A stretch of 64,000 nt of DNA, taken from contig CM068756.1 of the NCBI GenBank assembly GCA_035084275.1, forward strand, positions 14,880,001 to 14,944,000, given 5' to 3'. Within the stretch, counting starts at the first letter, position 1. Every line of letters begins with the position of its first letter. The notes under the pieces are model-generated. The model searched no databases and was not told the DNA's origin. It saw only the letters and a list, made by a program, of their open reading frames with translations. Shown in pieces: positions 495-64,000 of this stretch. The stretch comes from Hydrolagus colliei (taxonomy: Eukaryota). Position numbers and translations under genes: made by a program.

Positions 495-910
495 CATTCA
501 AAGTAAGAATAATAATAATAATGCCTGCATTTGAAATAGCGCTTTACACATCGTATCGACATCTCAAAGCGCTTCACAGAATACCTTATACTGTAAAGAG
601 AATTGACTGTATATTTGTGAGCGAAACGCGGCAGCCAACCGCCAAACATTCGTGGATTGAAATTACCAATTTTATGATTGTGGGTTTTTTGACAGATTAT
701 TATTATTTGTGTGGAGTAAGGAAACTTGCCCAAGGTTTCGTCCTGACCTGCCTGGATTCGAACACAGGTCTCACGCTTGTAAGGCGAGTGCTCTAACCAC
801 TGAGCTCCTCAGTTTTATTGAAATGTTTCGGTTTCGATTCAGCGCGTTGCTAATATTACTCGTGTCTGGCATCCTTGTAGATTATTTCAAAATTAATCCT
901 CTATGTAGCG
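495..910 (+). pseudogene. R1: activating-type TM exon interrupted by a SINE; upstream exons presumably left of the window
   Basis: Acceptor tctttgctcgtag|CA TTC AAA G, then the SINE, then LSFIEMFRFRFSALLILLVSGILVDYFKINPLCS G|GTAAGT. Clear paralog of the uninterrupted exon at 38877-38988. Confidence 0.8.
504..808 (-). mobile_element. tRNA-derived SINE (young family)
   Basis: Minus strand: A-box-like agctcagtggttagag, B-box gttcgaatcc, core ttggctgccgcgtttc, L2-like tail aagcgctttgaga...gcgctatttcaaatgca(tta)n. Confidence 0.9.
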
Positions 911-1534
911 GTAAGTCATTAATTGATTTGGGATGCTGCCGACCTGAATTTTAAAATCGTGGCTGAGTATAGAATAACTGACCTAAAGTGAGCTGTTGAA
1001 ACATATTGAGGCTGTGCGTTAGCAAGTAAAAATGAAGAAATTGTACTGGCAAGTTGAAGCAATCACTGCTGTGTGGTGGATTGCACCCAAAATAACCAGA
1101 AGCAATTTCTTTATTTTGTAAAGAATAATATGAATATTTTGTTGTTGAAAATCTGACATTGTCACGTATATTCGAGACCTCCCAACCTTTAAGTATCAGA
1201 TCACTATTTGATTGGCATGACTTTGAACGCATTATAATTGCGGTGTCAGATGAAGCGTCAACCCTGATGATAACTGATATTTTTCTTTAATGTTCTGATC
1301 AATTATTGATTGTGATTGTCATTTGTTTCCTTCCTGATTGCTGAGTTCCCAATCAATCTGATTTGGCAATCATCTGACAAAATGTTCGCATAACGTTTTG
1401 CAAAATAGCTTTTTCTTTCCATAAACTGTTGGTTTCTAATATATTCTACATAAGGATCAAATTGTGCCGAAAACAGTGATTAATGCGGACACTCCAAATG
1501 TAGCGGAATCCAGAGGTTTGAGTCCGCGCTGATG

Positions 1535-1582
1535 GAGGAAGTGGAAGTGGGAAGCGGGAAGCGGGTTTGGGGCGAAAGATAA
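1535..1582 (+). promoter_or_regulatory. Cluster of ETS/PU.1-like GGAA sites plus a GATA site (candidate enhancer)
   Basis: GAGGAAGTGGAAGTGGGAAGCGGGAAGCGGG followed by AGATAA; motif match only. Confidence 0.3.
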
Positions 1583-1890
1583 CGGAAGGCAGCTTGACAT
1601 CGCAATTTTGTATGAAATGCAAGAATCCATGAAATCAAAAGGCTAATTATTCAACAATACAGTATTGATAAATATATATGTTATTATAGGAACAAAGTAT
1701 GAGACATCAATGATAACAGGAACATTGAAGAACCGGAAGAGAATCTCCAGTATACGTCCAACTTAAATTATTAAATAAATATAAATAATGTTACACACGA
1801 ATACTAATTGTAGATTACTTGTGCCTATAAATTACCAAATGATGCAAAATAACTGCGGCTCGAATTCAATATATTATACTGTATTTGCAG

Positions 1891-1904
1891 ATTTTAGAAC
1901 ATAG
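1891..1904 (+). pseudogene. Candidate short terminal exon of R1 (D-F-R-T-stop)
   Basis: tgtatttgcag acceptor conserved in the paralog at 39909; phase 1 fits the TM donor. Confidence 0.3.
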
Positions 1905-3179
1905 GACAGGCTTTGCATAACTGTAAGCGTTTCCAATATTAACATGAACTTTGTATTTTAATTATTTTAAGTAATAGGTTAAGATCAATCTCGAGCGGTT
2001 AATATGTCTGCGTATAACTTGGATTTCGATGAATCTCAGTGCGAGTTGCCCACCCCGAGTTTGTGACAGGCTGTAGGAGATTGTACCTGCAGCCATCAGC
2101 AGGCACACAGAGTGTGCTGGGGTATAACCACAGAGCAGATTCAGAGGCGGATTGCAGTCAAGCAACACTTACCCAATGTCACATCAGAGCCAGTGTACCC
2201 TGAGGCTAAGGATCGCTGATGCTTTGGATTGAAGAAAACCTAACGCAGCGACAAGATCGCACAGGGAACTCAGATTGTGCCGCTTATTGGAGTAAACTGG
2301 TTTTACATGTAATACCCAATGATATAAACGTAGCAATGTGCGCCTGTCACTCGCGTCTTGCAAGTTTATTAGAATGTCGCAGACGTAAACGTGTCTTTTA
2401 AGTCGGTGTTGAATTGTTTTATGAACTGTATTGTAGAATTTTTAACGGGTTATTTTCCAGATTAAAGCAACTACCACACTCAACTACCCGAAAGACGCAT
2501 TAAACTAACAAAGTCAATATTTTTGAAGAAGACGAAAAGCTTGTTTCCTCCTTGATCCACCCTGACTCTTACGAATGATGGCAGAACAGGTGTTATGGGA
2601 AACCGCGTTAAAAAAACACAAGACGCAATTAATTTACTGCAGGGCAAAGTTGTAAGTGACGATGATCTACAGTGCAGGTGCCTCATTAAATTGAATACAT
2701 AATGCTACACTTGCCGATATGAACTCTATTTCCAATTGAATTGACAAACATAAACTCAGACGCGCGCAACCTAAATGTTTATTGTTTGATTTCTGTACCG
2801 ATTATGAACGGTAATTATGTGTTCAACACTATTCCACGGAGCTGTGATTCACTCCTTAGAGACAGACTGGCATAACTCCTGATCATGATCTCAAGAAATA
2901 TCAATTCAATTGACGGGGGCGTGGGCAAGGTTTCAATCTAATGGGGAGGAATTATTGTACAAAATATGATGGGATGGGAAGTGGGGTTGAAACAGAAGCA
3001 GGGAGTTGAATACTTAGTTAGCAAAGTTGGAATGCTCACTACTGTAAGAGAGAACAACACTGCATCGGAAACATAAATTTTTTCACAGTCCTCTTACACA
3101 ATATTTTGTGGAATGATTAATTATTGCTTATATAACACCTTGTATAACGTCCGGCTATCAACGGAATCACAACAATTTA

Positions 3180-3700
3180 CATTTACAAATAGCGACTTTC
3201 ACTTCGTAAACCACCTCCTATTGTAGACACCGGGATCTGGATTAGGAGCTGGGGAGGAGGCTCTTGTCAAGGCTGGTTTTGAAATCAATCAGTGGCCGGG
3301 GGGAGGGTGGGGGCGGGATCCCGACTGAAGTTTCAAACAGAAGCGAAAGGGTTGTCTGAAAGTTCTCCCATCTCCCGGGTTATGGCAGATCTGTCATTGG
3401 GTCATGGGATACTTGTGTATCTGCTGAACGGTTGAAGTAAAACGACAGTGAAGCCATTTTATCGTTAGCTATGGTTCCGGAGTTGGGCGCTCTGGGGATG
3501 GGAAGCCAGTGAAATCAAACCAGGATTGAGGTGTTATAAGTCTGATGAATGCTTCAGGATCACGACAGGCTAGGGGGGCGACGGTGATTGATTCAGGTGA
3601 TGTTGGGAATGTGCAGGAAACCTAACGATTGACAGTCAGGAAGGATAGTTGATTTTTGGAGGTCAGGTGATGTCTGGCATGTGCACCTTGTTTAGCAGTT
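3180..3700 (-). mobile_element. Old degraded L2 remnant (also at ~40650-41200)
   Basis: Minus-strand FHWLPIP-like and tttcaaaaccagcctt segments typical of L2 ORF2 3' region. Confidence 0.45.
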
Positions 3701-4615: not shown

Positions 4616-5003
4616 TTCTGCCATCCTCCCAACCATCACCCCCCCCCCCCTAACTCTGCCTCTCTGCTTGTCCCTGCACTGACTGTCCCCACTGTTTGGG
4701 TCTCGACCTGACTGTTCGGCACCTTGGACATCGCCCGATGTGAAAAGCGCTCTATAAATGTAATTTTGTTGGTGTTGTTGTTGCCCAGAAGCGAGAAAAG
4801 CTGTATATTACAAACAAGGATTTTTTATTTATTATTAAGTGGTTCAAGACATCCACCACACAAAACAGGAAATATTTCAAATATAAACACTATTTTATTT
4901 CATGTTGGACACTGCACTGCAATGTTAGCCCAGTCTATCAGTTTAATTGAGATTCGAGTTTGGAAACCACTATCTGTTGCTTCAGGGACAATTGTGCTGT
5001 CAA

Positions 5004-6800
5004 GGTTGGTCAAGGATAGGGTGGGGCCAATTAGGGATCTAGGAGGAAATCTCATTGTGGAGGCAGAGGGCATGGCTGATGTACTGAATGAGTACTTCGC
5101 CTCTGTCTTCACAAAAGAAAAGGATACAGCCAATGTCATGGTATTAGAGGAGAGGGTAGGAGAAATGGATAGAATAATTATAACCAGAGAGGAACTTCTA
5201 AACAGTTTGACGTTGCTCAAGGTGGATAAGTCACCTGGTCCGGATGGGATGCACCCTAGGTTACTAAGTGAGGCACGGGAGCAAATAGCAGGGACTCTGG
5301 CCACGATCTTTCAATCTTCCTTGGACACAGGGGTCGTGCCAGAGGACTGGAGGATAGCTAATGTTACTCCCTTGTATGAAAAGGGGCAGAAGGACAAGCC
5401 TGGTAACTACAGACCAGTCAGTCTAACGTCGGTAGTGGGCAAACTTCTAGAGTCCATAATCAGGGACAAGGTAGATCTTCACTTAGAAAGATATAGGCTA
5501 ATAAAGGACAGTCAACATGGATTTGTTAAAGGCAAATCTTGCCTTACAAATCTGATAGAATTTTTTGATCAGGTAACGGAATGGGTGGATAATGGTAGCG
5601 CAGTTGATGTAGTTTACATGGACTTTCAAAAGGCATTTGACAAAGTGCCACATGAGAGACTTATTAGGAAATTAAAGGCCCATGGCGTAAAAGGGACAGT
5701 GGCTGCGTGGATCCACAACCGGCTGCGAGACAGAAAGCAGAGAGTTGTAGTGAGCAGCTGTTTTTCAGATTGGAGGGAAGTGAGCAGTGGTGTGCCACAG
5801 GGATCAGTTTTGGGACCATTGCTGTTTGTAATCTAGATCAATGATCTGGACTTGGGTGTACGGAGTACAGTTTCCAAGTTTGCAGATGACACTAAGTTAG
5901 GGAGAATAGTAAATAGTGAGGAGGATAGTAGCCATCTGCAAGAGGATATAGCCAAATTGGTAAAGTGGGCAGACACATGGCAGATGAAGTTTAATGCAGA
6001 GAAGTGTGAGGTGATGCATTTTGGGAGAAGAAATGAAGGGAGGCAATATAGGCTAGATAGTAAAATTTTAAATGGTGTGAAGGAACAGAGAGACCTGGGG
6101 ATTTGTGTTAGTGACTCGTTGAAGGTGGCAGGACAGGTAGACAAGGCTGTTAAGAAGGCATATGGGATACTAGGCTTTATAAATAGGGGTATAGAGTACA
6201 AAAGTCAGGAAGTGCTGACTAACCTCTATAAGACTTTGGTGAGGCCTCAGCTGGAATACTGTGTTCAATTCTGGTCACCACACTACAGAAAGGATGTGAA
6301 GGCATTGGAAAGGGTACAACGAAGATTTACTAGGATGGTGCTAGGATTGAGGGACTTCAGCTATGAGGAGAGGCTAGATAGGCTAGGGTTATTCTCTCTG
6401 GAGCAGAGAAGATTGAGGGGAGACCTAATAGAGGTTTATAAGATCATGAGGGGTTTCGACAGGGAAAATAGAGAAAAACTATTTCCACTCGTGGGTGAAT
6501 CTGTGACTCGTGGTCACAGATTTAAAATAGTTTCAAGGCGAAGTAGAGGGGAGCTGAGGAGAAATTTTTTCACTTAGCGAGTTGTTCGAATCTGGAATGC
6601 ATTGCCTGAAAAGGTGGTGGAGGCTGATTCGATAACAACTTTTAAAAGGGAATTAGATCTGTATTTCGGGAGAACAGGTCTATTAGGCTATGGGGAGCGG
6701 GCAGGGCAGTGGGATTGAATCGCTCTTTTCAAAGAGCCGGCACAGACTAGATGGGCCGAATGGCCTCCTTTTGTGCCGTAAAATTCTATGAATCTATGAA
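5004..6800 (+). mobile_element. CR1 LINE, 5'-truncated, RT region with two nonsense codons
   Basis: ORFs 4724-5836 and 5852-6577 give PGPDG, YRPVSLTS, DFQKAFDKVPH, GVPQGSVLGP, FADD. TAG at 5834 and 6575; tail attctatgaatctatgaa. Empty site gtgctgtcaa|ctgaactgaa seen at ~7640. Confidence 0.95.
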
Positions 6801-8130: not shown

Positions 8131-9429
8131 ATCATCTTTTTTCTAAAAAAATTGGTTACTCAATCTACCACTGTTTGTGAGATACCCCAGGATGAAATTT
8201 GATATGGCGATTCACCCACAAAATGTACAGTTAAATTTTTCATTGTAATCATAATCATAATAATAACCTCAATAATATGCCATTTCTGGCAAGTCACCCA
8301 CCGTTTATCCATCTAGTAAAACCATATGAGTTAGGGCTTTGGGCTGCAGTGCTAACAGTGTTGCAATGTGAAGAATCCCTGCTCCCAGAGGGCCTGCTCC
8401 TCCAAGCAGTGCTGATGAGCCATTCTGGCTGGTCTATATCAGCAATGCTCTGGAATCCATCAAAATATTTGTATTGTACTTTGTATTGTCAAAAAATATC
8501 CTAGTATTTCCAATAATATGTTTCCCTTACATTCAGTAATGACTGTGTAATTGACCACCTTAGGTTAATTTTTGAGTGTGGGGTGCGATACCATAACTTA
8601 CATTTGAGATCATCTTTGCATCAAATATGACCAGGAAATGTAGGATAAAGATGGATGCTATTTCATTTTGTTTGCATCACTGACCTCAAAACTACTGGAG
8701 TATCAAGTATATTAAACCTCATAAAATCTGTGCATGGCTGTTGGTGTTTAAATGTTCTTTCTAAGCACTTGGGCAATAAACTCCTCTTATCATCTCCAAA
8801 CATCGTCTACCTCCTCTAACCAATTATACCATTAAAATTGTCTTTGTTGGGCAAGCTGTCAGCAATATTAAGTGTAAACTCAGCAAATTCATGGTTGTCA
8901 AAAGCTTGCAGCAGGTGTAAAATACTATTAAATGCTAAACACAATACTATATAGTCAAAAAAATTATTTGAGACGTTGAGGAAAGTAAATTGGAAGTATA
9001 AATTTAGCATAAATTGATGATCATCCCCTAAGGAGAAAGGAGAGTTAAAGGAATTTCCAAGGAAGACAATTACGATATGGATTGCTTCTGTTGTAAACAG
9101 ACTCCCCTCACTTCCCCCTTTTGATTTGGGTGATAATATGGACAGTATTTAAAATGAAATTTATAGACGTCTCAAAATGCTTCATAGGATGTACCATGAA
9201 GTCAATTGACAGTGTATTGTGTAGGCAAAATGGAGCAGCCAATTTTCCACAAACCGTGTTAATTCAGATTTTCACAAATTTACTTTTTATTTGGTTTGAA
9301 ATTCAGACTGCTTGTCCTAGCTGTAAAATGACAGTGTTCTTGGATGGATTGTGATTACTAACATAGTTTCTGCTCTGGTTGATAATACTCCAGTTCAATT
9401 TTGTATTTGTTCCACAGATGTCTAATAAT

Positions 9430-9725
9430 AACCCTTGCATTTGATATAGTGCTTTATCACGTCTTCTGGATGTCTCAAAGTGCTTCAGAGAATATACCGT
9501 AGAGTAAATTGACTGTATATTTTGTGTGTGAAGCTCAGCAGCCAATTGCACTCAGCACTGGTCTACAAACAGTTGTGGATTGAAATGACCAATTTTTTTG
9601 TTTTGTTCAGAGGGATTATTAATAGGTTTGTGAAATAAGGAAACTTGACCAAGGTTTTGCCCTACCTGAAATTGAACCCAGGCCACTTGTTTGCAAGACG
9701 AGTGCTCTAATCACTGAGCTTCAGG
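9430..9725 (-). mobile_element. tRNA-derived SINE
   Basis: Same head, core and tail as 504-808. Confidence 0.8.
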
Positions 9726-9984
9726 TCTCCACTCTATGTGGGATATTGCTGCACACAAATTGACTAGTGTCTTCTCTTGTAAAATACACGGTCAGTACAC
9801 TTTATGATCAATCCTGTCCTCCTCACATGAAAGGCGCTAGATTAAATAAAATTATTATGATTAATAGTTTCCAACTGTCATTCTGTCATTCTGTCCTGTT
9901 AAAAACATAGGAGGTGGATATGAAAGATCTCATGTCACGACTCACATTGAAGTTTGTCCCAGTATCCTGGCCATCAATGGAGTG

Positions 9985-10737: not shown

Positions 10738-11055
10738 GGAGCTCCAGTAGCTCAGCGGATAGAGCACTGGCTTTACAAGCATGAGACCTGTGTTCGAATC
10801 CAGGCAGGCCAGGGCGAAACCTTCGACAAGTTTCCTTACTCCACATGCCTAATAATAATTCCATCAACAAAAACAATAATAACAAATTGGTCATTTCAAT
10901 CCACGACTGTTTGTGAGACACTGCTGTGCGCAATTGGCTGCTGCATTTCGCCCACAGATATACAGTCAATTCACTTTACAGTATATTCTGTGAAGCGCTT
11001 TGAGGCATTGAAAGATGTGAAAAAGTGCTGTATCAAATGCAAGGATGATTATTAA
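10738..11055 (+). mobile_element. tRNA-derived SINE, full length
   Basis: tagctcagcggatagagc A-box, gttcgaatcc B-box, core gcaattggctgctgcatttc, L2-like tail. Confidence 0.9.
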
Positions 11056-12907: not shown

Positions 12908-13180
12908 TGGAGTCCTGTGGCTCAGTGGTTGGAGCTCTCGCCTCTCAAACGATAGACCTGGGTTTCATTCCAGACAAGGGTGAAACTCTGAGCAAATTTC
13001 CTTACTCCACACGTCTGATAATATTCCCTCGAAAAAAGCAATAATATATTAGTCAATTGACTGCCGCGTGTCGCCCACAAATATGCAGTTAATTCATTTT
13101 ACAGTTTATTCTGTGAATCATTTTGAGACGTCTAAAAGACGTGAAAAGCGTCAAATCAAATGCAAGGATTAATATTATAA
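12908..13180 (+). mobile_element. tRNA-derived SINE
   Basis: ggagtcctgtggctcagtggttggagc head and family tail. Confidence 0.85.
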
Positions 13181-14339
13181 TAATAGTATCATTGAAATTG
13201 GAGAAACCAGGTCACATTCACGCTTAAATGCCTTTTCTCTACAAGTAGTGTTTTAACGATGGGATGAAGTGAATATGGGTTAATTTTGATACAATACATT
13301 TGACAAGAGAACGGCTATTCAAGTCATCTGGTGAATCTTACCGTTGAGCTAAATGAAGTGCTGTGGTTATAACTTTAATGTCCACTTTGTGAAATGTCAA
13401 AATGGTTTCTCGTCCTTTCTCACCACTGAAGCCAGATGATGGCCATACAGAGGTTCTTTTGTAAAATATTAATAATATTAACTCTAGGACAGACAATGAT
13501 ACAGAATCAGTTATTGTGATCAGTTGGAAGATTGAACTTTATTTCCATTTGAATTGTATATGAATTCTTTCCTTGCAACGTTAAAATAAACAAGGTCCCC
13601 AGAGATGCGGCCCCACTATGTTGCAAGTGTCATAACAAGCAATCTGGAGGGAACTGATGCTGTTCGGATTTTTTTTATTTGGAACAATGTTTAGGTTGCC
13701 AAGTGTTAAAAGATGCTTCAAGGAGGTCCTGCCACTGTTCACCAGACCAACAGCTCGATGAAACGATTTAACCATAACGAGAAGATGCGTAAATGCGGTT
13801 CATATTGATAGACTTCAGAATGATGGGACGTCATTTGTCAATTAATTATAACATATTGCAATGATACATCCTTACAATAAGAGGTAAAGAAATAGAAGGA
13901 GACACAATTCTGTTATTTAGCAAAATGTGTTCGACCTGATATGAAAGCTAAATGTTTTTAGAGGTTAGAAAGTGGTAGAGAAATTGTGTTGAAACCAATG
14001 CCAGCAATATCGAGCAACAACAGCTGAAGATTTCATAATCTATAGATACATAAGTATACCTTCCTGTTCACATCAAATTCAGTTTTTTCTCCTGTGTTTC
14101 TTTAAAAGTTATAATTTTTGAACTACTGTAATTTACCATATTTAGAATAGGTAATTCAAAATAATTTCACGACTGTCGATGGGATATGTTTATCTGCTAA
14201 TTCGTGTGTTTCTAAACAACTGGTACTCATATAAATCAGAGATTCTGGATATTCTTTTCAATAGAAGTATTCTTATTTGCATTATTGTTAGTATTATAAG
14301 TATTATTGTTGTTTGTATATTAATAGAAATAAGAATAAT

Positions 14340-15059: not shown

Positions 15060-15350
15060 TAACATTCTCTGCTACTACTGCATTCAAGCGAGAGACCTGG
15101 GTTCGATTCCAGATAGGGCGAAACCTTAGGAAAGTTTCCTTACTCCACACGCCTAATATGAATTCTTCAAAAAGCAAATTAGAGTAAATTGGCCATTTTA
15201 ATCCACGACTGTTTGTGGGACACTGCTGTGCAGAATTGGCTGTCGCTTTTCGCCCACAAAACTGTTCATTCAATTCACTTTACAGGATACTCAGTGAAAT
15301 GTTTTGAAACATCTAGAAGATGTGAAAAGTACTATATGAAATGCAAAGAT
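15060..15350 (+). mobile_element. tRNA-derived SINE
   Basis: ggttcgattcc B-box, family core and tail. Confidence 0.8.
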
Positions 15351-27465: not shown

Positions 27466-27469
27466 GAAT

Positions 27470-49260: not shown

Positions 49261-49968
49261 TATTGGGCCTCTCGACTAACTACACAGGTCCTCGACAAGT
49301 TATCCCAAATATAGTTTAATTATGTGTGAGCCAAGACAATGAGTGATTGCAGCAAATTAGGCTACTCGATAGATATCACAAATGAATGGATGCTGTCACA
49401 CACACCTCTTTCCAACATACATTTCAATCAATCAAAACTTACATTTATATAGTGCCTTTCACATCGAGAGGACGTCCGAAGGTGCTGTGCAGTCAGGGTA
49501 GAGACAAGAGCAGGAGGGGGATTGGGGTAAGATGAAGCAGCATAGGAAAATTGACTGTATATTTGTGGGCAAAATGCGGCAGCGAAATTGCACACAACAC
49601 AAACAGTCATGGGAGTGGAATTAGGGGAGAAAGGGGGGAAAGATGGCAGGGGTCAGGTAAGGGGAAGGAGAGCAGGAAACCTAACTGTATATTTGTGGGT
49701 GAACAAAACAAAAGTTTTGGCAAACTTACTGAGAGTACCCGTTTCCCTTCCAAGACAAGGGATGTTGAGGTCATTTCCCACCGTCCAGACAACTCAGAGA
49801 GGGAGTTGTGTTCCCCTTGGTTTCTACAGATTGGTTTGAGCAGTTGGTTTTACAATTGAGCAAAACGACAAATCATGGTGGCAAATCAATGTGTTTACTT
49901 GTTTTACTGTATTGAAATTTTCAACTAAAGACTAAATTAATTAAATTCCAATTCCTCGGCTTTCATAG

Positions 49969-50085
49969 ATCAAGAAAAAGGCGGAAGGTCACAATGAGGT
50001 GTGTGCTGCTTCCGAGTTTTCTGACCCGAACAATGTAGTAAAACCTAAGAGAACTGACCCAAATACAGTATATGCTACAGTGCAG
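49969..50085 (+). CDS. R5 exon 7: first Tyr lost (Y to C), ITSM TVYATV
   Basis: tttcatag|IKKKAEGHNEVCAASEFSDPNNVVKPKRTDPNTVYATVQ|GTGAGA, 117 nt. Confidence 0.85.
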
Positions 50086-50420
50086 GTGAGAAACCATGAA
50101 CGACATTGGAGGGCATTTGTAGGGAAAGAAAATCAATTATACCTTGCATTGTTAGCTGCGCCAGCTGATCATTAGAGCATATCAATGTGTAAATTAATCA
50201 CCCCACATACAAATATATTAATGGATGTCGAGTTAAATTACTGTTCAATTGTGGATTGAATCAGGTACACCTATAATGATGATGGCAAGGAACAGTTGGC
50301 TTTATCAGCTGAGATATGGGAATAACCAAGGTGGAGATTCATATTGGTAATTCCTACGATATCTTTTTGCATAGAGAGTCAATCAACTAAATTAGCAATC
50401 CTTGTATTTTACTGAGCAAG

Positions 50421-50531
50421 CAAGGGGCGGCTGGTACCATGCCAACATATGCTGCTCTTGATTTTTATGACTCCAAGAAAATGCATAATCATACCCGCAG
50501 TGATGTAAATATGGTGTATGCCGAGATACAG
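50421..50531 (+). CDS. R5 exon 8: PTYAAL plus MVYAEI; acceptor altered, start uncertain
   Basis: QGAAGTMPTYAALDFYDSKKMHNHTRSDVNMVYAEIQ|GTGAGA; the in-frame acceptor would be aag at 50418-50420. Confidence 0.7.
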
Positions 50532-51239
50532 GTGAGAAGGAAGAGCAGAGTAATCTACAGAAACTAAGACCTAATGTCACAATCCTCAGTATATCAGTTA
50601 TATTCTCTGTAATGGTGAGTCAGTTCAGTTATGCCAATGTTGTGCTGTTGGTGCATTGCTATGATTCAAAGACCAGACAGTAGTTTAAGAATCAGAGAAT
50701 CGTGCCAGAGAGCAATAGATCATTCTTCCCAATCCAATTTGCACTAATTTTCTTTCCACACCAATTAACCCAATCTGAAACTTACATTCATTCAGCTTTT
50801 CCCACTTTTCCTTCCCATTCCTTTGCTTAGAGAATTCGGCCTTCTTCCCCACACTTTGCATGAAGAATTCATGATTATCTTAAATTTGTGCCCTCTAGTA
50901 ACTGAACCAGCTGCGTTTTCTTCCAGCCATCCCAGCAAATCTAAATCTCCTGTTCACTCCCTAACCCCATGTTGGAGTCCTGTGCCCCGGGACATGATTG
51001 TGCACAAATGGCCGTTACCTTTTGCCCAAAATATACAATCAATTCACTTTACAGTATATTCTGTGAGGCACTTTGAGATGTCTTGAGGATGTGAAAAGCG
51101 CTATATCAAATGCAAGGATTGTTATTGGTATTTACTATGCATTGACCTAGAGATATACCTGGGAAACTTATCAGTTTTTTTTTTATCAAGTTTGGATAAA
51201 GGAATAAGCTGACAATACTACTGAATATTGACTTTACAG

Positions 51240-51439
51240 GCCAAGCAAGCGGCAGCTGCTAACAAGCATACGCTGCTTTAGAATTTTATACCTCCAAGGA
51301 AACAAGCAAACCTAAACAGAGCAACAAGAATACAGAGTATGCCAAGTTCCAGGTGAGAAAACAAAAAGGAGCAATAGAGGCAAACTCAACAGATCATGAC
51401 TTACGTAATCTTGCAATGATAAGTGCAGAAGATGATTAA
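51240..51439 (+). CDS. R5 terminal exon with a 4-nt deletion (stop at 51279-51281; ancestral frame to 51439)
   Basis: actttacag|AKQAAAANK; TGAC missing relative to R6 63953. Repaired frame: LTYAALEFYTSKETSKPKQSNKNTEYAKFQVRK...EDD*. AATAAA at 51691 and 51802. Confidence 0.75.
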
Positions 51440-52699
51440 TGTACAGTACAATACAGTCATTCCATACAATGCGCAATATTGTCCCATCTTCTAAATCAAT
51501 TGCATCTGTCAAATACAGCTATAGTTATCTGTGGTTTTTGAATATTTTAGGCAGTTTCTTGCAATGAACTACTCGTGGTTAAATTTATTTCTGGATTTAA
51601 GTACTGAAATGTGAAGTTTTATATTTATCTGAAAATGTCATCAGATCTAACTAGTGAATTATTTAATCCAGAAACAGTCATTTGTCGCATAATAAATAAA
51701 CTTCAAAAACATAAAAACTCTAATCAATTTAAATAATTTTGGATTCATGTTTGATCACCTTTTTAGGTCATAATGTATCTTGTTTTGTGAACTTTTCCAA
51801 CAATAAACAATTCGGAAGCAAAACTTGTGTGCTTTCTGCTTTAATCACATTATTTGTTTGCAATATTCACCAAATGTGGGATGTGTTAGCTTGAAATCAC
51901 ATTTGTAAAATATCAAAATAGGTCAACATAGCTCAATTGGACCTTCAGCAATGAAAAGATTGAGATGTGGGTGTTGTACCTGTGAAATATCTGCTAAACT
52001 GTGCAAAACAGGAAGTGATTGGGCTTTCACTCCTGTTGTTTTTTTTGTGGTTGATGAGACTGATACTAATTGATTCCATTGCAGCTGGAGCATTCTCAGC
52101 TGAACAGAGTGTGATTTTATGAATTTTCTTCCATCACTAGTGGTTTTTGCAATATTCAGCAGTTGCTATGTGTACGTAGCTAACAGGCCTGAATTCTACC
52201 TATTGGCAGCCTTTAACACTGATACATTTTTATTATGTAATATTAATATGTATTACATTTATTTTGTGGACTAATAATTAATAGATTAATATGTAGACAT
52301 TGCAACACTTATAATCAGTTTTAATTGAAGAGTTGTTTCTTGCTTGAAGCCTTTGGACCTACTCCTGACATGAAAGGCGCTCTATAATATAATTTTTGTG
52401 TTGCTGTTTTGTTAAGAATGACTGGAAACCACCTGCTGGGACTGTATTGAGGAATCTTGAATGTTAAAATCAATCTGAAATCACATTAGTAAAGGCCGAA
52501 TCGTTTAAGATTAATGCAATCAGGTGCAGCAAATTCAAAAATGAACTCATTCTGTGCAGCTTCTGCACTTCCCTTTCATTATCTGGGCACTCTACTGGAC
52601 TCCACACTGGACTCACTTTAAACTCACTTTAACCCTTATTAATATATCAATTTGGTAGCCCTACTTTTTACCTGTGCCATTCAATTATTCCTTGTAATG

Positions 52700-52990
52700 C
52701 TCCTGCTTTAGCAGCAGATTTAAGACAGCATGTTCTTGGCTGATATTACCGTATGTTGCTGTGGGGAATGCTGCATTGTTTAAGGTGATATCATTGGCAT
52801 CGTACAGTAGGAAGCCCACTCTCCCTATTCTGCATGTTAAAAAAAAAGCTTCTGTCGGTGTCCAGCTAAGTTGTCAATCACCTTATGGCTGTTTGTGGAA
52901 TTTTGCTGTGCACAAAATTGCTGTCAAATTTGCTTAGAAAATACAATCACTATATTTAACATTCATTAGTGTAAATCATTTGTGAGTTTT
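52700..52990 (+). mobile_element. Old DeuSINE-like element
   Basis: ggctgtttgtggaattttgctgtgcacaaaattgctg core. Confidence 0.5.
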
Positions 52991-54265
52991 CAACTGTATT
53001 GGTGCTAAAAGAAATGAATAGTTTATTTTCTGCGTAAGGAATATCTCCCTAAGACTGACATCAGGATGAGATACTCTAACCCAAAGGATCAAATCGGATG
53101 GGGAAAGAAAGCAAGATACCAATGGAATGGTGTGCATCTATAACAAATCAGGAACAAAAAAGGGGAAATAAATGGACGGGCGATAGTAGAAAGGTGAAGG
53201 ATATAGATACGGTTTTAAGTTGTTAATGTAGATACAGTAATATTTTGTATGCTAATAAGTGAAGAACAACATTTTAAAAGGTGCTGATGGCTATCAAGAG
53301 GTATGCTGCATGGTAGTTTGCAAATTTGGAAGAGAGACACCACCGCCCCCATGTGATATTTCATCTTAAAGAACCTGTTGCGGGGGCTGAACAGCTACTA
53401 ACCACATATTCAGTATTCAGGGCTTCTTGCAAACATACAAAACCACTTGATCAATCTTACTTGTCTGCATCTCATACCTATCTATTCAACCAGCTTTCAT
53501 TTCACACAATGAACCAATCATATAACGTTCTGCTTTTACAGACCATGTAAGGAATATTCGAATATTGACATGCCCTGATAGAGAGAGAAAATGTTTCTAA
53601 GACCGATGAAAAGCTGAACAGAAACAGAGAAATTCGGAGTAAAATACATAGCAGAATTAGCATAACAGAGAGAAACAAAAACCAAAGAAACATAAACAGC
53701 TTTAATAGGTTATTAAAATGTACTAAATATATATTCAGAAACATTTTATTGCAGTAACCATCATCTTGTCACCTATTGATTTGCATTCTATATTGAATAT
53801 GGTATCCATTATTGGTTTTATGGCTCTTTGGGGGTCATCTGCTGACAAGTTTGGGGTTAAAGCGCTCTGAGACACCGTCCAGCATGGAGGGCATTATATA
53901 AATCTAAGTTGTTGTTGTTTTTGTGGTTTATTGTTGTAGCTGAGGCAGACAATATGTTATTTTCTGCAGTTCAAAAAATTATTATCGGCTTTCCTGTTCC
54001 TCAGGAAATCTACTGCATGCGGCTTGAAACAGAACCCAATTATTTTCTTGCAGACCTCAGCACACAAACACTTTCCACCATTAACTGTTGGTTGGCTTCA
54101 TTGTTGGGAAACTGCCTTGGGTTCTGATGTCATATACAGCGCACCCCAGTGTCACCTCAACTATTAACAGGCAGATGAGCACCAGCCTTGGCTGGTATTG
54201 AGACTGGAATTTTCGCCTGTGTTACATATTCCCGACTGTGAATGCGCCACCTGAGTAGACATTGC

Positions 54266-54880
54266 AACATAAGAACATAAGAATTAGGAGCAAGAGTCGG
54301 CCATTCGAGCCTGCTCCGCCATTCAACAAGATCATGGCTGATCTTCTCACCTAACTTTGATTACCTGCCCTATCCCCATATCCCCTAATCCTTCTATTGT
54401 TCAAAAATCTATCAGTCTCAGCCTTGAAAATGTTCAAGGACTGAGCATCTACAGCCTTCTGGGGGAGTGAATTCCATAAATTCACTACCCTTGAGTGAAG
54501 AAATATTTCCTCAACTCTGTTCTAAAAGGCTGACCCTTAATTTTAAGACTGTGACCCCTGGTTATAGATTCTCCTACCAGGGGAAACAGTCCCTCAGTGC
54601 CTACTCCATCTAGCCCTTTAAGAATCTTATATGTTTCAATAAGATCCCCCCTAATTCTTCTGTACTCTAGAGAGTATAGCCCTAGTTTATTTAACCTATC
54701 CTCATAGGTCAGTCCCCTCATCCCTGGAACTAACCTAGTGAATCTACGCTGCACCCCCTTACTCTCTAAGGCAAGTATGTCCTTTTTTAAATAAGGAGAC
54801 CAAAACTGCACACAATACTCTAGGTGCGGTCTCACCAGAGCCCTATACAGTTGCAGCAACACTTCCCTACTCTTATACTC
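54266..54880 (-). mobile_element. CR1 3' fragment (second family, acataaga tail)
   Basis: ORF 54485-54946: LYRALVRPHLEYCVQFWSP, RGDLIETYKI. Confidence 0.9.
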
Positions 54881-55699
54881 ATGTTTTGATGTAAAAAGTT
54901 TTGGATATTGTTTTACAGAAGCGTTTGTGGGATGATTGAAACACATTTCTGGCTATGCAGCGTTCTCGACTTATTGCTAAGAATTTCAGTATTCTCAACT
55001 AAATGATAAAGCTCTTAAACTTATAGAAGGAACTTGAAACGGAACCATAGCACCCGACGCTTTTCTTTCCAACACTTACACTGTTCTTGTCATTGGCTCA
55101 AAGTTTTGTTCACAGAAGATTTAAACCCAGTTATCTCTGAAGCACAACACACTTGTGATCAGTTGAAATCTGTTAACGCATATACCGTACTCACCTTGTC
55201 TTTGGGGTTAATTTGGATGCGAGTGTGGAAACCACAATCGGTTGCTGCAGAGACAAGTGTGACATCAACTGAGCTGCGTTTACACCAAAACCACAATGTT
55301 ATTATTCATTGATCACAACCTTATCACAATGCTCTCCACCTCCCCATCTATCTACAGTATTTCCAATCTGCCCTGAACTCTTCACCTCACCGCGATCACG
55401 AAACCTTAGGTGCCCAGCGTCACAGAATTATTCAACATAATTCTCGTACGTGTGTTCCTCTAAAGTAAACAAAAGCATTTCGACATCACATCTAGTTATT
55501 TTTGAGAGAACCACGTAGGTTTATGTTTCCTTCACTTCAAAAAATGAACGGTAGATGGAAGCACCACTGTATCATACTGGTACTTAATCGTGCAATCTGC
55601 AGAATCATTTCAGTACACATTTAACTCCTCCCATCTCCAGCTGCTCAATATTGATAATAATAATAATCATAATCCTCCCATTTGATAAAGTTTTGATCA

Positions 55700-55960
55700 C
55701 CAGGTGAAAGCGCTTCACTGGATTTAAGGCACTGACGTTTCACAGTAGTTGAAAGCCGCAGTAAATTTGCCCAAAGCAAAGTCGCACAAACAGACAGGAA
55801 ATAAATTCCAAAACATTTGTTATTTACCTTAGGATGTATGATCAGGACATGGTGAGAATATTCATTCTGTTTTCCAGTAGAGACATAGGATGTTTTAAAC
55901 CAGCTAAGAGGCAAAACGGACCTCTGGTAAATGGGACACTCGAAGGATAGCACCTCAAGG
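55700..55960 (-). mobile_element. Old DeuSINE-like element followed by the 5' half of a tRNA SINE (55958-56075, +)
   Basis: ggtgctatccttcgagtgtc on minus; ggagtcctgtagctcagtggttagagc on plus. Confidence 0.6.
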
Positions 55961-56594
55961 AGTCCTGTAGCTCAGTGGTTAGAGCATGCACCTCACATGC
56001 GAAAAACCTGGGTTCGATTCTAGGCAGGGTGAAACCTTGGATAAGTTTCCATACTCCATAAGCCTAATAAAAATCCTTCAAAAAAGAGTCATGCCTCAGA
56101 ATTCATCATTATTGGAAAATTTCACAAAACATGATAAGGTATTACTTTGAAAAAGGTGATAAAGCACAATACAGTGTGACGCCAAAGCCATTTGAACTGA
56201 TCACAGTTTATGTTTTTGAGGCTTGTTTATTGTTGTATTGTGATTATTTCTTAATTAAAGAATTCACAAGTTAGGTCCAATGACATTATCAGATAAATAT
56301 AATGCATTACTGATCAGTACTTAAAACTGGAAATAAATTTCACCAGGACTACTTTTCTAAAAAGAACCACATAAAATATTTAAAGATCACAAATAACTAT
56401 AGTTGTGTTTGACAGATGGAATTTATTTGCAATTTGTGGCATTATTCCACATTGCGTGGAATGATTAACATTGTTCTACTGCCACTTGTACTGATAATCC
56501 TCGCATATGATATCGTCCTTTTCATCTCTTCTAGGCATCTCAAAGCGCTTCAGAGGATTTACAGTAAAGTTAATTTTTAGTGTGAGGAAATGGC

Positions 56595-56745
56595 TTTGAG
56601 AGAGAGTGACTAAGGAACAGAGGTGTGAGAAAGTCTGAGAGAGAGAGAGGCGGGGTGGGGTTGGGGTGGAGCAAGAGTCTGAGAGAGTCTGAGGGAGAAA
56701 GAGAGAGAGACTGAAAGAAATCAAGAGAGAGTGACAGAGAGAATC
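56595..56745 (+). repeat. GA-rich low-complexity tract
   Basis: (ga)n and gagagtct arrays. Confidence 0.7.
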
Positions 56746-56969
56746 CTTGGGCAAGTTTCCTTACTCCCCACGCCTAATAATAATCAATCCTTCAAAACAA
56801 AATTGTTTCAATTTAATCTGTGACTGTTTTGGGACACTGCTGTGTGCACATGGCTGCCACATTTCACCCACACATATACAGTCAATTCACTTTACAGCAT
56901 ATTCTGTAATGTGCTTTAAGATGTCTAGAGGAAAAGTGAAAAGTGCTATATCAAAACACAAGGATTGTT

Positions 56970-58500: not shown

Positions 58501-58558
58501 ATGTTGGCGAGTGTTGTGTTTCAGTGTCTGTCTCTCACAGTGTGGATCATTTCTAAAG
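58501..58558 (+). CDS. R6 exon 1: signal peptide
   Basis: Identical 58-nt leader. Confidence 0.9.
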
Positions 58559-58657
58559 GTTTGTGACTATTCACTATCCCAGTGATCTCAAACAGAAAGT
58601 GTGTGTCTCTGTCACAGTATTTTGTTTCAAAACAATGTTTGACTTTATTTCTGACAG

Positions 58658-58963
58658 TTGCTGACAGTACATTGATCACAGGAACACAACAACCCGAACA
58701 GATCACTGTCAACAGAGGTGAAGATGTGACATTCACCTGCACCATATCTCATATACCAAGCATGAACATACACTGGTGGAAACAGGGAAAGTGTGAAAAT
58801 GTACTACTGGATGACAATAAAACATTTCATGTCGAAACTTCTGGAAATGTCTCCCTCAAGCTCCTGGATGCAGCTCACAAGGACTCTGGGATGTATTACT
58901 GTACCATGGTGTTGCAGGGAAGTACAACAGTAAAGGGAACTGGATCATATTTAACGGCTTGTG
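58658..58963 (+). CDS. R6 exon 2: VJ-type V domain
   Basis: 306 nt; VTFTC, HWWKQGKC, DSGMYYC, KGTGSYLTAC. Confidence 0.95.
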
Positions 58964-59783: not shown

Positions 59784-60095
59784 AGCCCGCAATTCCTCTG
59801 AATGTTTCATCCCCATCTCCTCAAAGAGATTCATCTGTGTGTCTGACCCTCGTGTGTGAAACAGCAGAGAGTTTCCCGGAGAATCTCGCCTTCACATGGT
59901 CTAAAGACGGCACCGAAATTACAGCTGGAATAATCACCAATAAACGGCAGAACCTGGAGGGACTGTATGAAGCTTCCAGCTCTGTGGAGGAGACACAGCC
60001 TGTCCAGAATGGGACAGTTTATTCCTGTCGGGCGTCTTATCTCAGTTTCAGGACTCCAGCAATTCGCAACAACACGGTTCAGCGTCCTCCTCAAG
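59784..60095 (+). CDS. R6 exon 3: C1-set domain
   Basis: ttattgcag|AG CCC...CAA G|GTAGGA, 312 nt; SVCLTLVCETAESFPENLAFTWSK...YSCRASY. Confidence 0.9.
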
Positions 60096-61070: not shown

Positions 61071-61414
61071 GATTATAATAATAATAATAATAATCCTTGC
61101 ATTTGATATAGCGCTTTTCACATCTTATCAACGTCCCAAAGCGCTTCACAGAATATACTGTAAAGTGAATTGACTGTATATTTGTGGGCGAATCGCGGCA
61201 GCCAATTGCGCACAGCAGTGTACCCCACACAGTCGTGGATTGAAATGACCAATTTTATTATTGTGGTTTTTTTTGGAGGGATTATTATTGGGTGTGTGGA
61301 GTAAGGAAACTTGCCCAAGGTTTCGCCCTCGCCTGGATTCGAACACAGGTCTCCCCAGCTTGGTCTCCCCAGCTTGCAAGACAAGTGCTCTAACCACTGA
61401 GCCACAGGAGCTCC
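61071..61414 (-). mobile_element. tRNA-derived SINE, full length
   Basis: ggagctcctgtggctcagtggttagagc, gttcgaatcc, core, (att)n tail. Confidence 0.9.
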
Positions 61415-61600: not shown

Positions 61601-61714
61601 TGGACAATTATTGGCTGCTACAGACATTACTGACCGCTGGATCTGCAGTGGGGCTGGCTTTTTCAGTGCTTTTGGTGTACATTGTCAAGCGATCCAAATT
61701 AAAGAATATCAAAG
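61601..61714 (+). CDS. R6 exon 4: uncharged TM
   Basis: tatctatag|VDNYWLLQTLLTAGSAVGLAFSVLLVYIVKRSKLKNIK G|GTAAGA. Confidence 0.9.
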
Positions 61715-61886: not shown

Positions 61887-62086
61887 GATCAATTCCCAGC
61901 TTTCTAGACAACCGTAGGAGGGAATGGGTACCTGTAGTTTCTTTATCGATGGGTTTGAGCAGTTGTCTTTCCAATTGAGCTGCAGGAGAGACCATGCTGA
62001 AGATTACAGTGGATTTTTTGTTAACTGTGCTTCAATTTCAACATAAAGACTTAAATAATTAATTTCCAATTCCCTGGCTTTTATAG

Positions 62087-62203
62087 ATCTGGAACAAAAC
62101 AGAAAATAATAATCAGGTATATGCCAGTTTGGAGTTTTCTGGCCTGGAGAAAGTAGGAAAACCTAAAAGAAGTGAACCGAATACAATGTATGCTACAGTG
62201 CAG
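62087..62203 (+). pseudogene. R6 two-Tyr module (VYASL, TMYATV), out of phase with the TM exon
   Basis: ttatag|IWNKTENNNQVYASLEFSGLEKVGKPKRSEPNTMYATVQ|GTGAGA. Confidence 0.85.
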
Positions 62204-62981
62204 GTGAGAAAGTGGAAAGGATATTGTAGACCATTTAAAGGAAACATTGATTCTCATTTAGTTCTCACAATCTCATTCACTTGTTACCTGTGAGATGATT
62301 ATCAGCACAAAATAATTGGAGGTTCCCTACAATGTAAAGCAATATGTAAAGTAGTCCCATGGACGATATCCAACCATCTAACCCCCGCACACAAACATAT
62401 TAATGGATGTTGAGTTCAATAACAAGTGTCTCCATATCAATCATGCATTGAACCAGGTACATTTATAATGCTTATGGTACTAATGAATTGAGATATGGGA
62501 AAAACCAAGGTGGAAATTCATATCGGTATTTTCTATGGTGTTTCTGGGTTTTTTACATTGAGCGTGAACTGACTAAATTACCAATACTTGTCTTCATTCA
62601 ATTCAAGATTCTGGTCCTCACCATTTTAGCTGTCGATGGGCTTGCAACACCCTATATCTGTGACCTCCTCTCTCCCTACCAACCTATCCGCTTCTTCTGC
62701 TCAGTGGGCTCCAGCCTGCTCCATGTCCCATAATACCTCCGCCCCACCATCAGTGGCTGAGCCTAATGCCACTATATCTTGCCTGCTTCCTAGTCTGCTT
62801 CAATTCCTGCCTGAAAACCTTCCTCATTGATGGTGCCAATAGTCAGTGCTCCCACTCCCCTCCACCCTCCCCAATCCTGACCCCATCTTGCGTCTGATAC
62901 GCTGAATGTCCAGCACCTTGGGATGTCCTCCCAACATGAATGGTGCTATCCAAATGTAATTTTATTGTTATTGTTTTACAG

Positions 62982-63119
62982 ACCAAGCAAGGGGCACATG
63001 GTAATAACCTAACATATGCTGCTCTTGATTTTTCTGAGTCCAAGACAACACAAAAACATAACCGCAGTGACACAAATGTAGTGTATGCCGAGATACAGAT
63101 GAGAAAGAACAGCCGATGA
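62982..63119 (+). pseudogene. R6 two-Tyr module (LTYAAL, VVYAEI) with donor GT changed to AT
   Basis: ttttacag|TKQGAHGNNLTYAALDFSESKTTQKHNRSDTNVVYAEIQ then ATGAGA, reading on as MRKNSR*. Confidence 0.85.
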
Positions 63120-63261
63120 CTCTCCGTCATAGCAAACTGTGCTTATTAACACCAATGCTGCGCTGTGTTGCTAGTGTATCACCATTATTCCCAGATGAAA
63201 CTGAAGATCAAGAATTAAAGAATCATGCCAGAGGGAAACACACCATTCTTCCCAATGCAAG

Positions 63262-63600
63262 AACATTAGATTAAGGAGAAGGAGTTATTAAATTTAATAA
63301 GCCATTTAATAAGATCATGGCTGATCTTCTAATCTAACTCCACCAGCCCATTTTATCCCCATATCCCCATATCCTTCAATCCCTTTATCCAAAGAAATCC
63401 ATCAATTTAATTCTTCAATATGTTCAAGGACTGAGTATCTACTGCCTTTTAGAGTAAACAATTCCACAAATTAACTACCCTCTAAGTAAAGATGTTTTTC
63501 CTCAACATTGTGCAAACAGGCTAACCCTAATCTAAGACTGTGACCCCCTAGTTATAGTTTCTCCAACCAAGGGAAATAGTCTCCCACTGTCTACTCTACA
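63262..63600 (-). mobile_element. CR1 3' fragment (family of 54266 and 56970)
   Basis: aagatcatggctgatctt, tgttcaaggactgag, gactgtgacccc. Confidence 0.75.
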
Positions 63601-63952
63601 AGCTGCACTAATTTTTTTCCACAACTATTATCCCAATCTAAAATTTCCATTGGCTCTTCAATCCATTCAATTTTTCCCACTTTAAGTATGTGTCCTTTTC
63701 TTTGTTTACAGAGAATTCAACCTTATTGCCCATCCTTTACGTATAGAATTTGTGATGATCTTAAATATGTGCCCTCCAATAACTGGCAAGCTGTGTTTTG
63801 CTACAAACATCCAAGCAAATCTAGTTCTCCTGCTTGCTTCCCAACTACATGCCTTGACCTTTACTGCGAACTATATCTAGAAAAATATCAGAAGTTTATC
63901 AAAGTTGGACAAAAGGATAAGCTAACAATGTTTCCAAACATTGACTTTACAG

Positions 63953-64000
63953 GCCAAGCAAGAGGCAGCCGCTAACAAGCTGACATACGCTGCCTTCCAA
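63953..64000 (+). pseudogene. R6 terminal module, cut by the window edge
   Basis: actttacag|AKQEAAANKLTYAAFQ. Confidence 0.75.

Follow-up and report, generated by a model that had tools for sequence, protein, structure and literature searches.

Introduction

Does the genome of the holocephalan Hydrolagus colliei hold a family of paired activating and inhibitory receptors? Cartilaginous fish are the oldest lineage with antibodies, with T-cell receptors (TCR) and with a major histocompatibility complex (MHC), and their germline activating and inhibitory receptors are poorly known. The question is raised by a stretch of 64,000 nucleotides (assembly GCA_035084275.1, contig CM068756.1, positions 14,880,001 to 14,944,000), called the window below and numbered from its first letter. 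An initial annotation had described six related loci in it. We name these loci R1, A, B, C, D and E; they correspond to R1, R2, R3, R4, R5 and R6, respectively, of that annotation. According to our analysis, the window probably carries part of a cluster in which genes for type I membrane receptors of the immunoglobulin superfamily (IgSF) stand in tandem and in inverted order; the genes do not rearrange and would form a SIRP-like paired family of a holocephalan. Each gene consists of a split leader, a single-exon variable (V) domain of the VJ type (V together with a joining, J, strand), one C1-set constant domain and, last, a signalling module of either of two kinds. We describe exon anatomy, domain types, the two transmembrane (TM) and tail types, the mosaic formed by genes C and D, and the distribution of the family in cartilaginous fish; expression, adaptor pairing, phosphatase recruitment and ligand we infer.

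Architecture of the receptor genes

The window has a GC content of about 40% and no runs of N. Searching all six frames with tblastn and a profile hidden Markov model (HMM) revealed two sets of related exons, four for V and five for C1, at E-values of 1e-52 to 1e-60. Altogether there are four identical split-leader exons, four VJ-type V exons, five C1-set exons and six TM exons; HMM and regular-expression scans of the six frames of the window gave neither a sixth V or C1 exon nor a V exon for gene B. In Pfam the first domain is V-set/Ig and the second C1-set, both exceeding the gathering cut-offs. Leader, V, C1 and TM exons had been ascribed to all six loci. They are complete in four of the six (A, C, D and E), while R1 is represented by its TM exon only and B is without leader and V.

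The exons are joined in a uniform manner. All leader–V, V–C1 and C1–TM junctions are of phase 1 with AG/GT sites, in agreement with the consistent splice phases noted initially; the C1 donor of gene B is the exception. A leader exon of 58 nt lies 5′ of each V exon, encodes MLASVVFQCLSLTVWIISK and ends in a phase-1 donor. The V exon opens at a phase-1 acceptor, includes a J-like strand (NGTGxxLTV) and closes at a phase-1 donor. Since V and J are encoded in one exon, the genes are non-rearranging. With single-exon V and J, split leader and C1-set exon all present, they belong to the non-rearranging VJ-C1 class that includes UrIg, SIRP and tapasin-like genes. Uninterrupted proteins of 287, 252 and 354 residues are predicted for A, C and E, respectively, from 4–7 exons with canonical splice sites and correct phases. 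The AlphaFold model of gene C, with a mean predicted local distance difference test (pLDDT) value of 86.5, has two β-sandwich domains and a 33-residue helix.

The leader exon together with its GT donor is identical at 60 of 60 nt in all four copies (19426–19485 in A, 35508–35567 in C, 43966–44025 in D and 58501–58560 in E), where no such identity is expected by chance; the V exons of the same genes differ at a synonymous divergence (dS) of 0.02–0.51. Either gene conversion has homogenised the 5′ ends, or the signal peptide and 5′ region are under unusually tight constraint. Between A and C, D or E the dS of the V exon is 0.37–0.51, under half of that of the C1 exon (0.88–0.94). Low V dS combined with identical leaders suggests homogenisation of the 5′ parts of the genes.

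In the holocephalan members A, C, D and E the V domain ends in Cys (LTVC or LTAC), at a position occupied by Tyr, His or Ala in most shark members. Further cysteines are the CC pair in the stalk of gene A (DCCG) and a Cys adjoining the TM Arg in gene C. The cysteines at the V end, in the stalk and next to the TM could serve as putative interchain disulfides.

Two types of transmembrane and tail modules

The six TM exons are of two types, and the division coincides with the one drawn initially between loci with an Arg-bearing TM and short tail (R1, A and C) and loci with an uncharged TM and tyrosine motifs (B, D and E). In the three Arg-TM exons the Arg is followed by Asp 18 residues on (17 between) and by almost no tail; the segments are ILRFIFCFLVVIVLTIFIVDH in A, MCRLGFSGLIILLLAVIIVDY in C and MFRFRFSALLILLVSGILVDY in R1. 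The stop codon of gene C falls inside the Arg-TM exon, and this segment is the single 33-residue helix of the AlphaFold model.

RefSeq models in which C1 is directly followed by the same type of TM (R-x17-D/E) come from Scyliorhinus, Carcharodon, Cetorhinus, Mustelus, Heterodontus, Heptranchias and Chiloscyllium; the segment reads, for instance, IPRLVLGFLIILGLLGIIVDH in Scyliorhinus, THRFILAFLVILILTTIIVEH in Carcharodon and VRLLMAFLVILALTAIIVDH in Heptranchias. When 13 segments are stacked ungapped, 11 have Arg and 2 have Gln, and the acidic residue is aligned in its column. In white shark DNA the Arg-TM exon lies about 1.7 kb past C1 and has phase-1 AG/GT borders, the spacing being that of gene C and the donor phase that of R1. 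A tblastn search with the Heptranchias Arg-TM peptide (P0065) recovers the gene A exon at E 9.5e-6, and this exon is 53–57% identical to the shark exons, its R-x17-D spacing being the same. The separation of chimaeras from elasmobranchs dates from very early in the history of jawed vertebrates. Because the gene A exon matches shark exons across this split, we read the Arg-TM exon as what is probably one ancient, functional module. In Callorhinchus milii the picture is different: there is no Arg-TM among the models retrieved, and the 31-kb C. milii locus L002 (MU249845.1) contains only a weak FIEYCR-like remnant (E 0.27) of the beginning of the exon. This remnant (ALRFIEYCR.., L002 513–614) is situated about 140 bp 3′ of an uncharged TM exon and may be a decayed activating module or chance. 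The initial expectation that automated annotation would miss Arg-TM exons is perhaps right for C. milii, but in elasmobranchs the RefSeq models of at least eight species have them.

Arg placed 3–8 residues into the TM from outside is seen in receptors that use FcRγ or CD3ζ (NKp46, NKp30, GPVI, FcαRI, LILRA), and partners of DAP12 have Lys in the middle of the TM. The candidate activating module has an Arg near the outer leaflet, an Asp/Glu 18 residues later, where the TM reaches the inner side, and fewer than 30 residues of tail. By analogy with other Arg-TM receptors, this form would pair with an adaptor of the CD3ζ/FcRγ type, bearing an acidic TM residue and immunoreceptor tyrosine-based activation motifs (ITAM), and would activate the cell when its V domain binds a ligand.

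In B, D and E a basic stretch closes the uncharged TM, the phase changes from 1 to 0 in a short linker exon, and cassette exons with tyrosine motifs follow. The cassettes are 111–117 nt long, of phase 0 and of the form ..xxTYAxLDx..(about 19 residues)..xVYAEIQ, with two tyrosines about 23 residues apart, the first in a motif like the immunoreceptor tyrosine-based inhibition motif (ITIM, [SIVL]xYxx[ILV]) and the second in one like the switch motif (ITSM, TxYxx[VI]) or ITIM. Gene E has three ITIM/ITSM motifs (LTYAAL, VVYAEI, TMYATV) and one YxxL, that is, four tyrosines of the SIRP-tail kind; gene D has three ITIM/ITSM motifs (VTYITL, TVYAKI, TVYATV) and gene B three ITIMs (VAYVTL, VTYAKI, LTYSVL).

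A SIRP-like tail had been proposed from the start, and here the comparison with human SIRPα is favourable. The tail of a C. milii family member (P0013) is colinear with all four SIRPα tyrosines over 81 residues (pairwise E 4e-6), the pairs being YATLDL/YADLNL, TVYAQT/TEYASIQT, VTYAALD/LTYADLD and TEYAEIQ/SEYASVQ; SIRPα is also among the best PDB matches. Of the human sequences compared, those of SIRPα D1 and NKp30 V were verified residue for residue against PDB chains. We regard the colinearity of the four-tyrosine tails as a strong lead. If the analogy with SIRPα holds, binding of a ligand by the V domain would be followed by phosphorylation of the ITIM/ITSM tyrosines; these would then recruit phosphatases with tandem SH2 domains (SHP-1/2 type), and the cell would be inhibited.

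Pairing and exchange of modules

Genes C and D provide an argument that the two modules belong to one paired family, as had been claimed for the cluster and its VJ-C1 ectodomains. Their ectodomains are 94% identical, yet C carries the Arg-TM and D the ITIM tail. Such near-identical ectodomains on an activating and an inhibitory member are a hallmark of paired receptors. At the DNA level C and D are 91–92% identical from about 800 bp 5′ of the leader through the C1 exon (34727–37436 vs 43168–47889); in the following intron it drops to 83% over the initial 258 bp, beyond which no identity remains. The remainder of the C1–TM intron of C is colinear with the intron of E, and past a fragment of a short interspersed element (SINE) at 38613–38729 the 3′ module of C is 75–87% identical to that of R1 over about 3 kb. 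Over C1, the DNA of A and that of B agree at 86%.

Gene D, together with the flank downstream of it (48458–55897), is colinear with the C. milii XP_007902894 gene (L002 16349–25849) at 70–77% identity, introns and intergenic DNA included, and gene D is therefore the orthologue of that gene. Since D and its C. milii counterpart share only 70–77%, the identity of C and D is younger than the species split. Gene C itself is a chimaeric gene with a D-type ectodomain and an R1-type activating module. The SINE copies at the junctions of gene C make unequal recombination mediated by SINEs a plausible route to it.

A maximum-likelihood tree of 66 ectodomain sequences joins C and D as sisters (support 97), then E (95) and then C. 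milii P0001 (99). On this tree the activating or inhibitory label changes at least 7 times, and all of these changes are forced by well-supported branches. Ectodomains and signalling modules would accordingly have been recombined repeatedly. The same pattern is known from KIR and Ly49, whose activating forms are reported to have arisen repeatedly from inhibitory homologues (PMC2213150).

In the V exon the ratio of non-synonymous to synonymous divergence (dN/dS) is 0.84–0.97; the C–D pair gives 1.76, but on seven changes only. In C1 the ratio is 0.39–0.51 for old pairs and about 1 for young pairs. We also considered dN/dS as a test of positive selection and discarded it, values near 1 being uninformative. 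The initial description of the family as rapidly turning over applies in part: pseudogenes, the recent duplication or conversion of C and D and a dN/dS of about 1 agree with it, while some activating members have shark orthologues that are 61–85% identical.

Condition of the six loci

R1 is reduced to a remnant of an Arg-TM exon on the plus strand (808–910, ..FIEMFRFRFSALLILLVSGILVDYFKINPLCS) with a phase-1 donor G/GTAAGT. Its acceptor AG at 493–494 is parted from the remnant by a SINE of about 313 bp (495–807), within which the phase-1 frame meets a stop; the start given in the initial annotation, 495, is exactly the first base past this AG. The SINE is tRNA-derived and lies on the minus strand, with an Rfam tRNA match at 752–806. 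The flanks 359–490 and 808–2009 are homologous to 38737–38871 and 38888–40035 at gene C. Leader, V and C1 of R1 were not found within the window, and we place them upstream of it.

Gene A is on the minus strand. Its leader (19428–19485, with a phase-1 donor) is followed by an intact VJ-type V exon at 18964–19269 (C...WW...YYC...NGTGSKLTV), a C1-set exon at 18059–18379 (phase 1-1, found by HMM and Pfam) and the Arg-TM exon at 17105–17219 (DCCGMSENLTILRFIFCFLVVIVLTIFIVDHVKISQLE), which has a phase-1 acceptor. The latter is either spliced at AG/GTATGG or read through to the stop at 17040–17042. The tail is short both ways, with at most about 30 further residues beyond the Arg-TM.

Gene B, also on the minus strand, is a pseudogene. 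The donor GT of its C1-set exon (33664–33984) is mutated to GC, and HMM, regular-expression and leader-pattern scans of the window gave no leader or V upstream of C1. Homology between A and B, in the V–C1 intron of A, stops at 34403, and the duplication unit of C and D starts at 34727. The uncharged TM exon (32565–32666, ..QLIAGCAVGGLIFLLLLIIIGKQCQFKKGK) precedes the cytoplasmic exons (28335–30933), which comprise a small exon (30890–30933) and tyrosine cassettes at 30362–30472, 29779–29889 (with an in-frame TAA), 29218–29328 and 28335–28461 (with a frameshift).

Genes C, D and E are on the plus strand. Gene C has its leader at 35508–35565, an intact VJ-type V exon at 35665–35943, the C1-set exon at 36867–37178 and the Arg-TM exon at 38877–38986 (VFKGLGFIEMCRLGFSGLIILLLAVIIVDYFDINPL, then stop), which has a phase-1 acceptor. 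Relative to D its V exon lacks 27 nt (9 codons, SQYMVMDHK) of the C′–C″ region; otherwise the two differ at 7 nucleotide positions, 6 of them non-synonymous. In gene D the leader (43966–44023) is followed by a V exon at 44123–44428 in which the second canonical Cys is lost (YYS for YYC, in YYSS), by the C1-set exon at 47322–47633 and by the uncharged TM exon at 48260–48364. The cytoplasmic exons of D (48518–51360) include the small exon 48518–48561 and the cassettes cy1 (48794–48904; VTYITL, TVYAKI), cy2 (49969–50085; first Tyr changed to Cys), cy3 (50421–50531; shifted acceptor) and cy4 (from 51240; a 4-nt deletion leads to an early stop). Gene E consists of the leader (58501–58558), an intact VJ-type V exon (58658–58963), the C1-set exon (59784–60095), the uncharged TM exon (61601–61714) and cytoplasmic exons (61908–64000), namely the small exon 61908–61927, cy2 (62087–62203; QVYASL, TMYATV), cy3 (62982–63119; LTYAAL, VVYAEI; donor lost, then stop) and a cassette-like exon (63953–64000) that is cut by the end of the window.

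A and C look functional as activating genes and E as an inhibitory one. Gene D is damaged, and B and R1 are pseudogenes or fragments.

Could the cluster be a decaying relic in which no copy is functional and the Arg-TM exons of the window are unused? Disabling changes in B, D and R1, dN/dS near 1 and heavy invasion by SINEs and long interspersed elements (LINEs) would fit such a reading, as would the Arg-TM exons of C and R1, whose conservation (about 79%) does not exceed that of the flanks. Against it stand the frames of A, C and E, open over 4–7 exons, the complete identity of the leaders and the similarity of the gene A Arg-TM to the shark exons at a preserved R-x17-D spacing. We therefore consider a relic improbable and prefer a paired family with some functional members.

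Several observations nevertheless weigh against a working paired family. Three of the six loci (B, D and R1) are defective. An exact look-up of four predicted proteins in a collection of 15 billion proteins gave no match. The donor of the gene A Arg-TM exon is of phase 2, unlike the phase-1 donor of white shark and R1. In gene E the 20-nt linker exon has a modest donor (TGG/GTACCT), and the tail is out of frame without this linker. A dN/dS near 1 means fast protein evolution and would fit relaxed constraint and diversifying selection equally well. Finally, a 2014 survey found shark genomes to be without an FcRγ homologue (PMC4016189); because FcRγ is reported missing, our best guess for the adaptor of the Arg-TM forms would be CD3ζ or an unrecognised relative.

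Relatives in other cartilaginous fish

The best protein matches are from C. milii, at 60–67% identity, and the C. milii leader MLASVVFQCLSLLWIISKVAD is near-identical to that of the window. With these closest proteins and the non-coding colinearity of 70–77% at gene D, the cartilaginous fish origin suggested for the DNA finds agreement. A survey of other chondrichthyans, as the initial annotation had called for, places relatives in C. milii, in several shark orders and among rays (Pristis, Hemitrygon), and in elasmobranch models C1 is joined to the Arg-TM. Within each species the relatives share one chromosome-sized contig, and nearly all homologues have one C1 per protein. An exhaustive HMMER search of proteins gave 92 cluster representatives at E ≤ 1e-30, a number that includes long multi-Ig proteins (P0002, P0003) and is not a count of family members. 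A word-indexed protein search with gene E returned no match. There is also a third subtype of the family, seen in the homologues P0074, P0095 and P0126 and not in the window. Its TM starts with WWIY.C and its tail is rich in Lys, Arg and Pro (..KKHRKKERDP..), with neither ITIM nor Arg-TM pattern.

Names given to members by NCBI are SIRPα-like, SIRPβ1-like, tapasin-related, NCR3 ligand 1-like (B7H6-like) and Igλ-like. One orthologous group, 61–85% identical across sharks, bears three of them (Igλ-like, tapasin-related and B7H6-like), and "NCR3-like" is found in none of about 45 family names retrieved. Such scattered automatic names hide the family in public annotation.

The name NCR3 ligand 1-like, carried by several members, together with the V-C1 ectodomain, might suggest that the proteins are ligands of the B7 family (B7H6/NCR3LG1-like) and not receptors. 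The automatic names of one orthologous group, however, conflict with each other. The VJ-type V with its J-like G strand and the alternative between ITIM cassettes and an Arg-TM with short tail are receptor features, and it is Ig light chains, UrIg2 and SIRP, not B7, that match best in sequence and structure. We find B7 ligands very hard to reconcile with these observations and continue with receptors as the preferred reading.

Repeats in the window

The 64 kb contain some 20 copies or fragments of a SINE of about 310 bp, the head of which is derived from tRNA. Besides the copy in R1, it occurs at 9423–9720, 10746–11054, 12920–13181, 15085–15369, 44832–45100, 56741–56955, 61076–61402 and elsewhere; Rfam tRNA matches, in addition to the one in R1, are at 9657–9728, 55961–56032 and 61324–61411. 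SINE copies are located just 5′ of the TM exons of R1, C (the fragment 38613–38729) and E. It is possible that SINEs in this position are recombination points for swapping signalling modules.

The V–C1 intron of gene D contains a LINE fragment of about 1.9 kb on the minus strand (45113–47004) with an open reading frame for a 560-residue reverse transcriptase (45193–46875; Pfam RVT_1, E 1.7e-33). A second copy of the same LINE family, broken by stops, is at 4724–6577 on the plus strand. The region 20000–28000 has a GC content of 48% and a strong GC skew that flips from -0.30 to +0.21. It contains fragments of a second retroelement bearing reverse transcriptase, at 20329–22376 (plus strand), 24123–24815, 26145–26791 and 27153–27464 (all minus strand).

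Novelty and implications

Full-text literature searches and reference trails gave no published description of the family, although the likeliest papers fell outside that coverage; that the family has already been published is possible, if rather doubtful. Public annotation already contains the genes, and paired receptors as such are well known. A family of this type would give cartilaginous fish a candidate paired receptor system of natural killer (NK) or myeloid cells. It would mean that the SIRP-type tail and the adaptor logic of the charged TM go back to the base of jawed vertebrates, and it would bring one more non-rearranging VJ-C1 lineage into discussions of how antigen receptors originated. 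Should the activating form signal via an adaptor like CD3ζ, it would offer a living model for a pre-RAG antigen-receptor chain. A broader proposal can be put forward only tentatively: a VJ-C1 paired family that predates the holocephalan–elasmobranch split, is a sister or forerunner of SIRP, fills the NK/myeloid niche in a lineage reported to be without receptors of the KIR, LILR and FcR types, and has an activating form resembling a TCR chain.

Comparison with known receptor systems

In PDB sequence searches the V-C1 ectodomain matches UrIg2 best (9dmx, E 4.8e-19), and SIRPα, SIRPγ and Ig light chains are also among the closest; the best structural matches of the AlphaFold model are Ig light chains, spanning both domains. 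A PDB profile search with the V domain was swamped by multi-Ig proteins and did not discriminate.

The V domain had initially been considered NKp30-like, and this part of the interpretation we abandon. In hhalign the family V profile reaches a probability of 97.3 and a score of 63.7 with human NKp30, and 96.2 and 53.4 with SIRPα D1, at 24% identity in both cases. As the two scores are alike, the V domain has no specific affinity to NKp30. Ig and TCR V domains match it as well or better in PDB searches, and NKp30 is not among the top 60 PDB matches of the V domain.

Are the genes nevertheless members of the published shark NCR3 (NKp30) family, so that their paired organisation has already been described? 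Shark NCR3 is reportedly a divergent multigene family. Common to NCR3 and the genes studied here are a non-rearranging VJ-type V, a J-like GTGxxLxV strand and, in the activating form, a short tail behind a TM with Arg; the hhalign result with NKp30 V can be added on this side. NKp30, however, is without C1, while here a C1-set exon follows every V, and the V profile fits SIRPα about equally well. The names are also at odds with this assignment, none of the family names retrieved being "NCR3-like". Location differs as well. NCR3-labelled genes of sharks and rays adjoin AIF1, lying between AIF1/PRRC2A and DDAH2 on the MHC chromosome, and those of sawfish are "NCR3-like" at NCBI (Veríssimo et al. 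2023). Chromosomes carrying the family measure 193.5, 198.8 and 54.0 Mb, but the MHC chromosome tables end at 115.6 Mb in white shark, 163.4 Mb in catshark and 19.8 Mb in sawfish. This indirect argument from chromosome sizes in relatives of the window species places the family on a chromosome other than the MHC chromosome with NCR3. A placement of the white shark member P0080 in MHC class III was rejected on the same sizes. Membership in the NCR3 family is thus unlikely, and we return to a SIRP-like family as the preferred reading.

A VJ-like V followed by C1-set domains is a rare layout outside antigen receptors and MHC. SIRP shares it with the present family; both also have paired members whose ectodomains are nearly the same, activating forms in which the TM has a basic residue and the tail is very short, and inhibitory tails with four tyrosines in two ITIM/ITSM pairs. 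The family could even comprise true (co-)orthologues of tetrapod SIRPα/β, that is, the cartilaginous-fish SIRP locus with one C1 fewer. The tail colinear with human SIRPα, the same paired logic, the positions of SIRPα and SIRPγ among the top PDB sequence matches and the many NCBI names of the SIRPα-like and SIRPβ1-like kind speak for orthology. There are, on the other side, clear differences. SIRP has two C1 domains and this family one C1 exon per gene. SIRPβ has Lys in the middle of the TM, whereas here Arg is near the outer leaflet and a conserved Asp/Glu-His is found at the inner end. The tail is encoded by reiterated cassette exons of variable number, and V identity to SIRPα D1 is about 24%, no better than to NKp30. 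In weighing the tail it should also be borne in mind that D1 is the part of SIRPα whose sequence was verified in PDB. Orthology to SIRP is, in our opinion, a possibility to be kept in mind but not the likelier outcome. Because of one C1 instead of two and Arg instead of Lys, we call the family "SIRP-like" rather than SIRP. We place it as SIRP-like in function and layout, and it is not NKp30.

Among other systems, UrIg and UrIg2 of elasmobranchs have a split leader, single-exon VJ and a C1-type domain as well (PMC12227049). They are different in that UrIg is secreted, UrIg2 has nine C domains and no activating/inhibitory pair is described for them (PMC12227049), whereas the genes of the window have a single C1 and two signalling modules. 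KIR, Ly49, LILR, CD300 and teleost NITR form clusters that duplicate rapidly and contain many pseudogenes, and in them too an ectodomain of inhibitory type is joined to a charged-TM module. Their domains, however, are of the C2/I-set, lectin or V-only/V-I kinds, and none has C1. In shark genomes homologues of KIR and LILR (LRC-type), FcR-like genes and FcRγ are reported to be absent (PMC4016189). The chains of the TCR resemble the activating form in VJ, C1, a short Cys stalk (DCCG in gene A), a basic TM residue and a tiny tail. In the family described here, unlike in TCR chains, V and J are in one exon and do not rearrange, and the likeness is architectural only.

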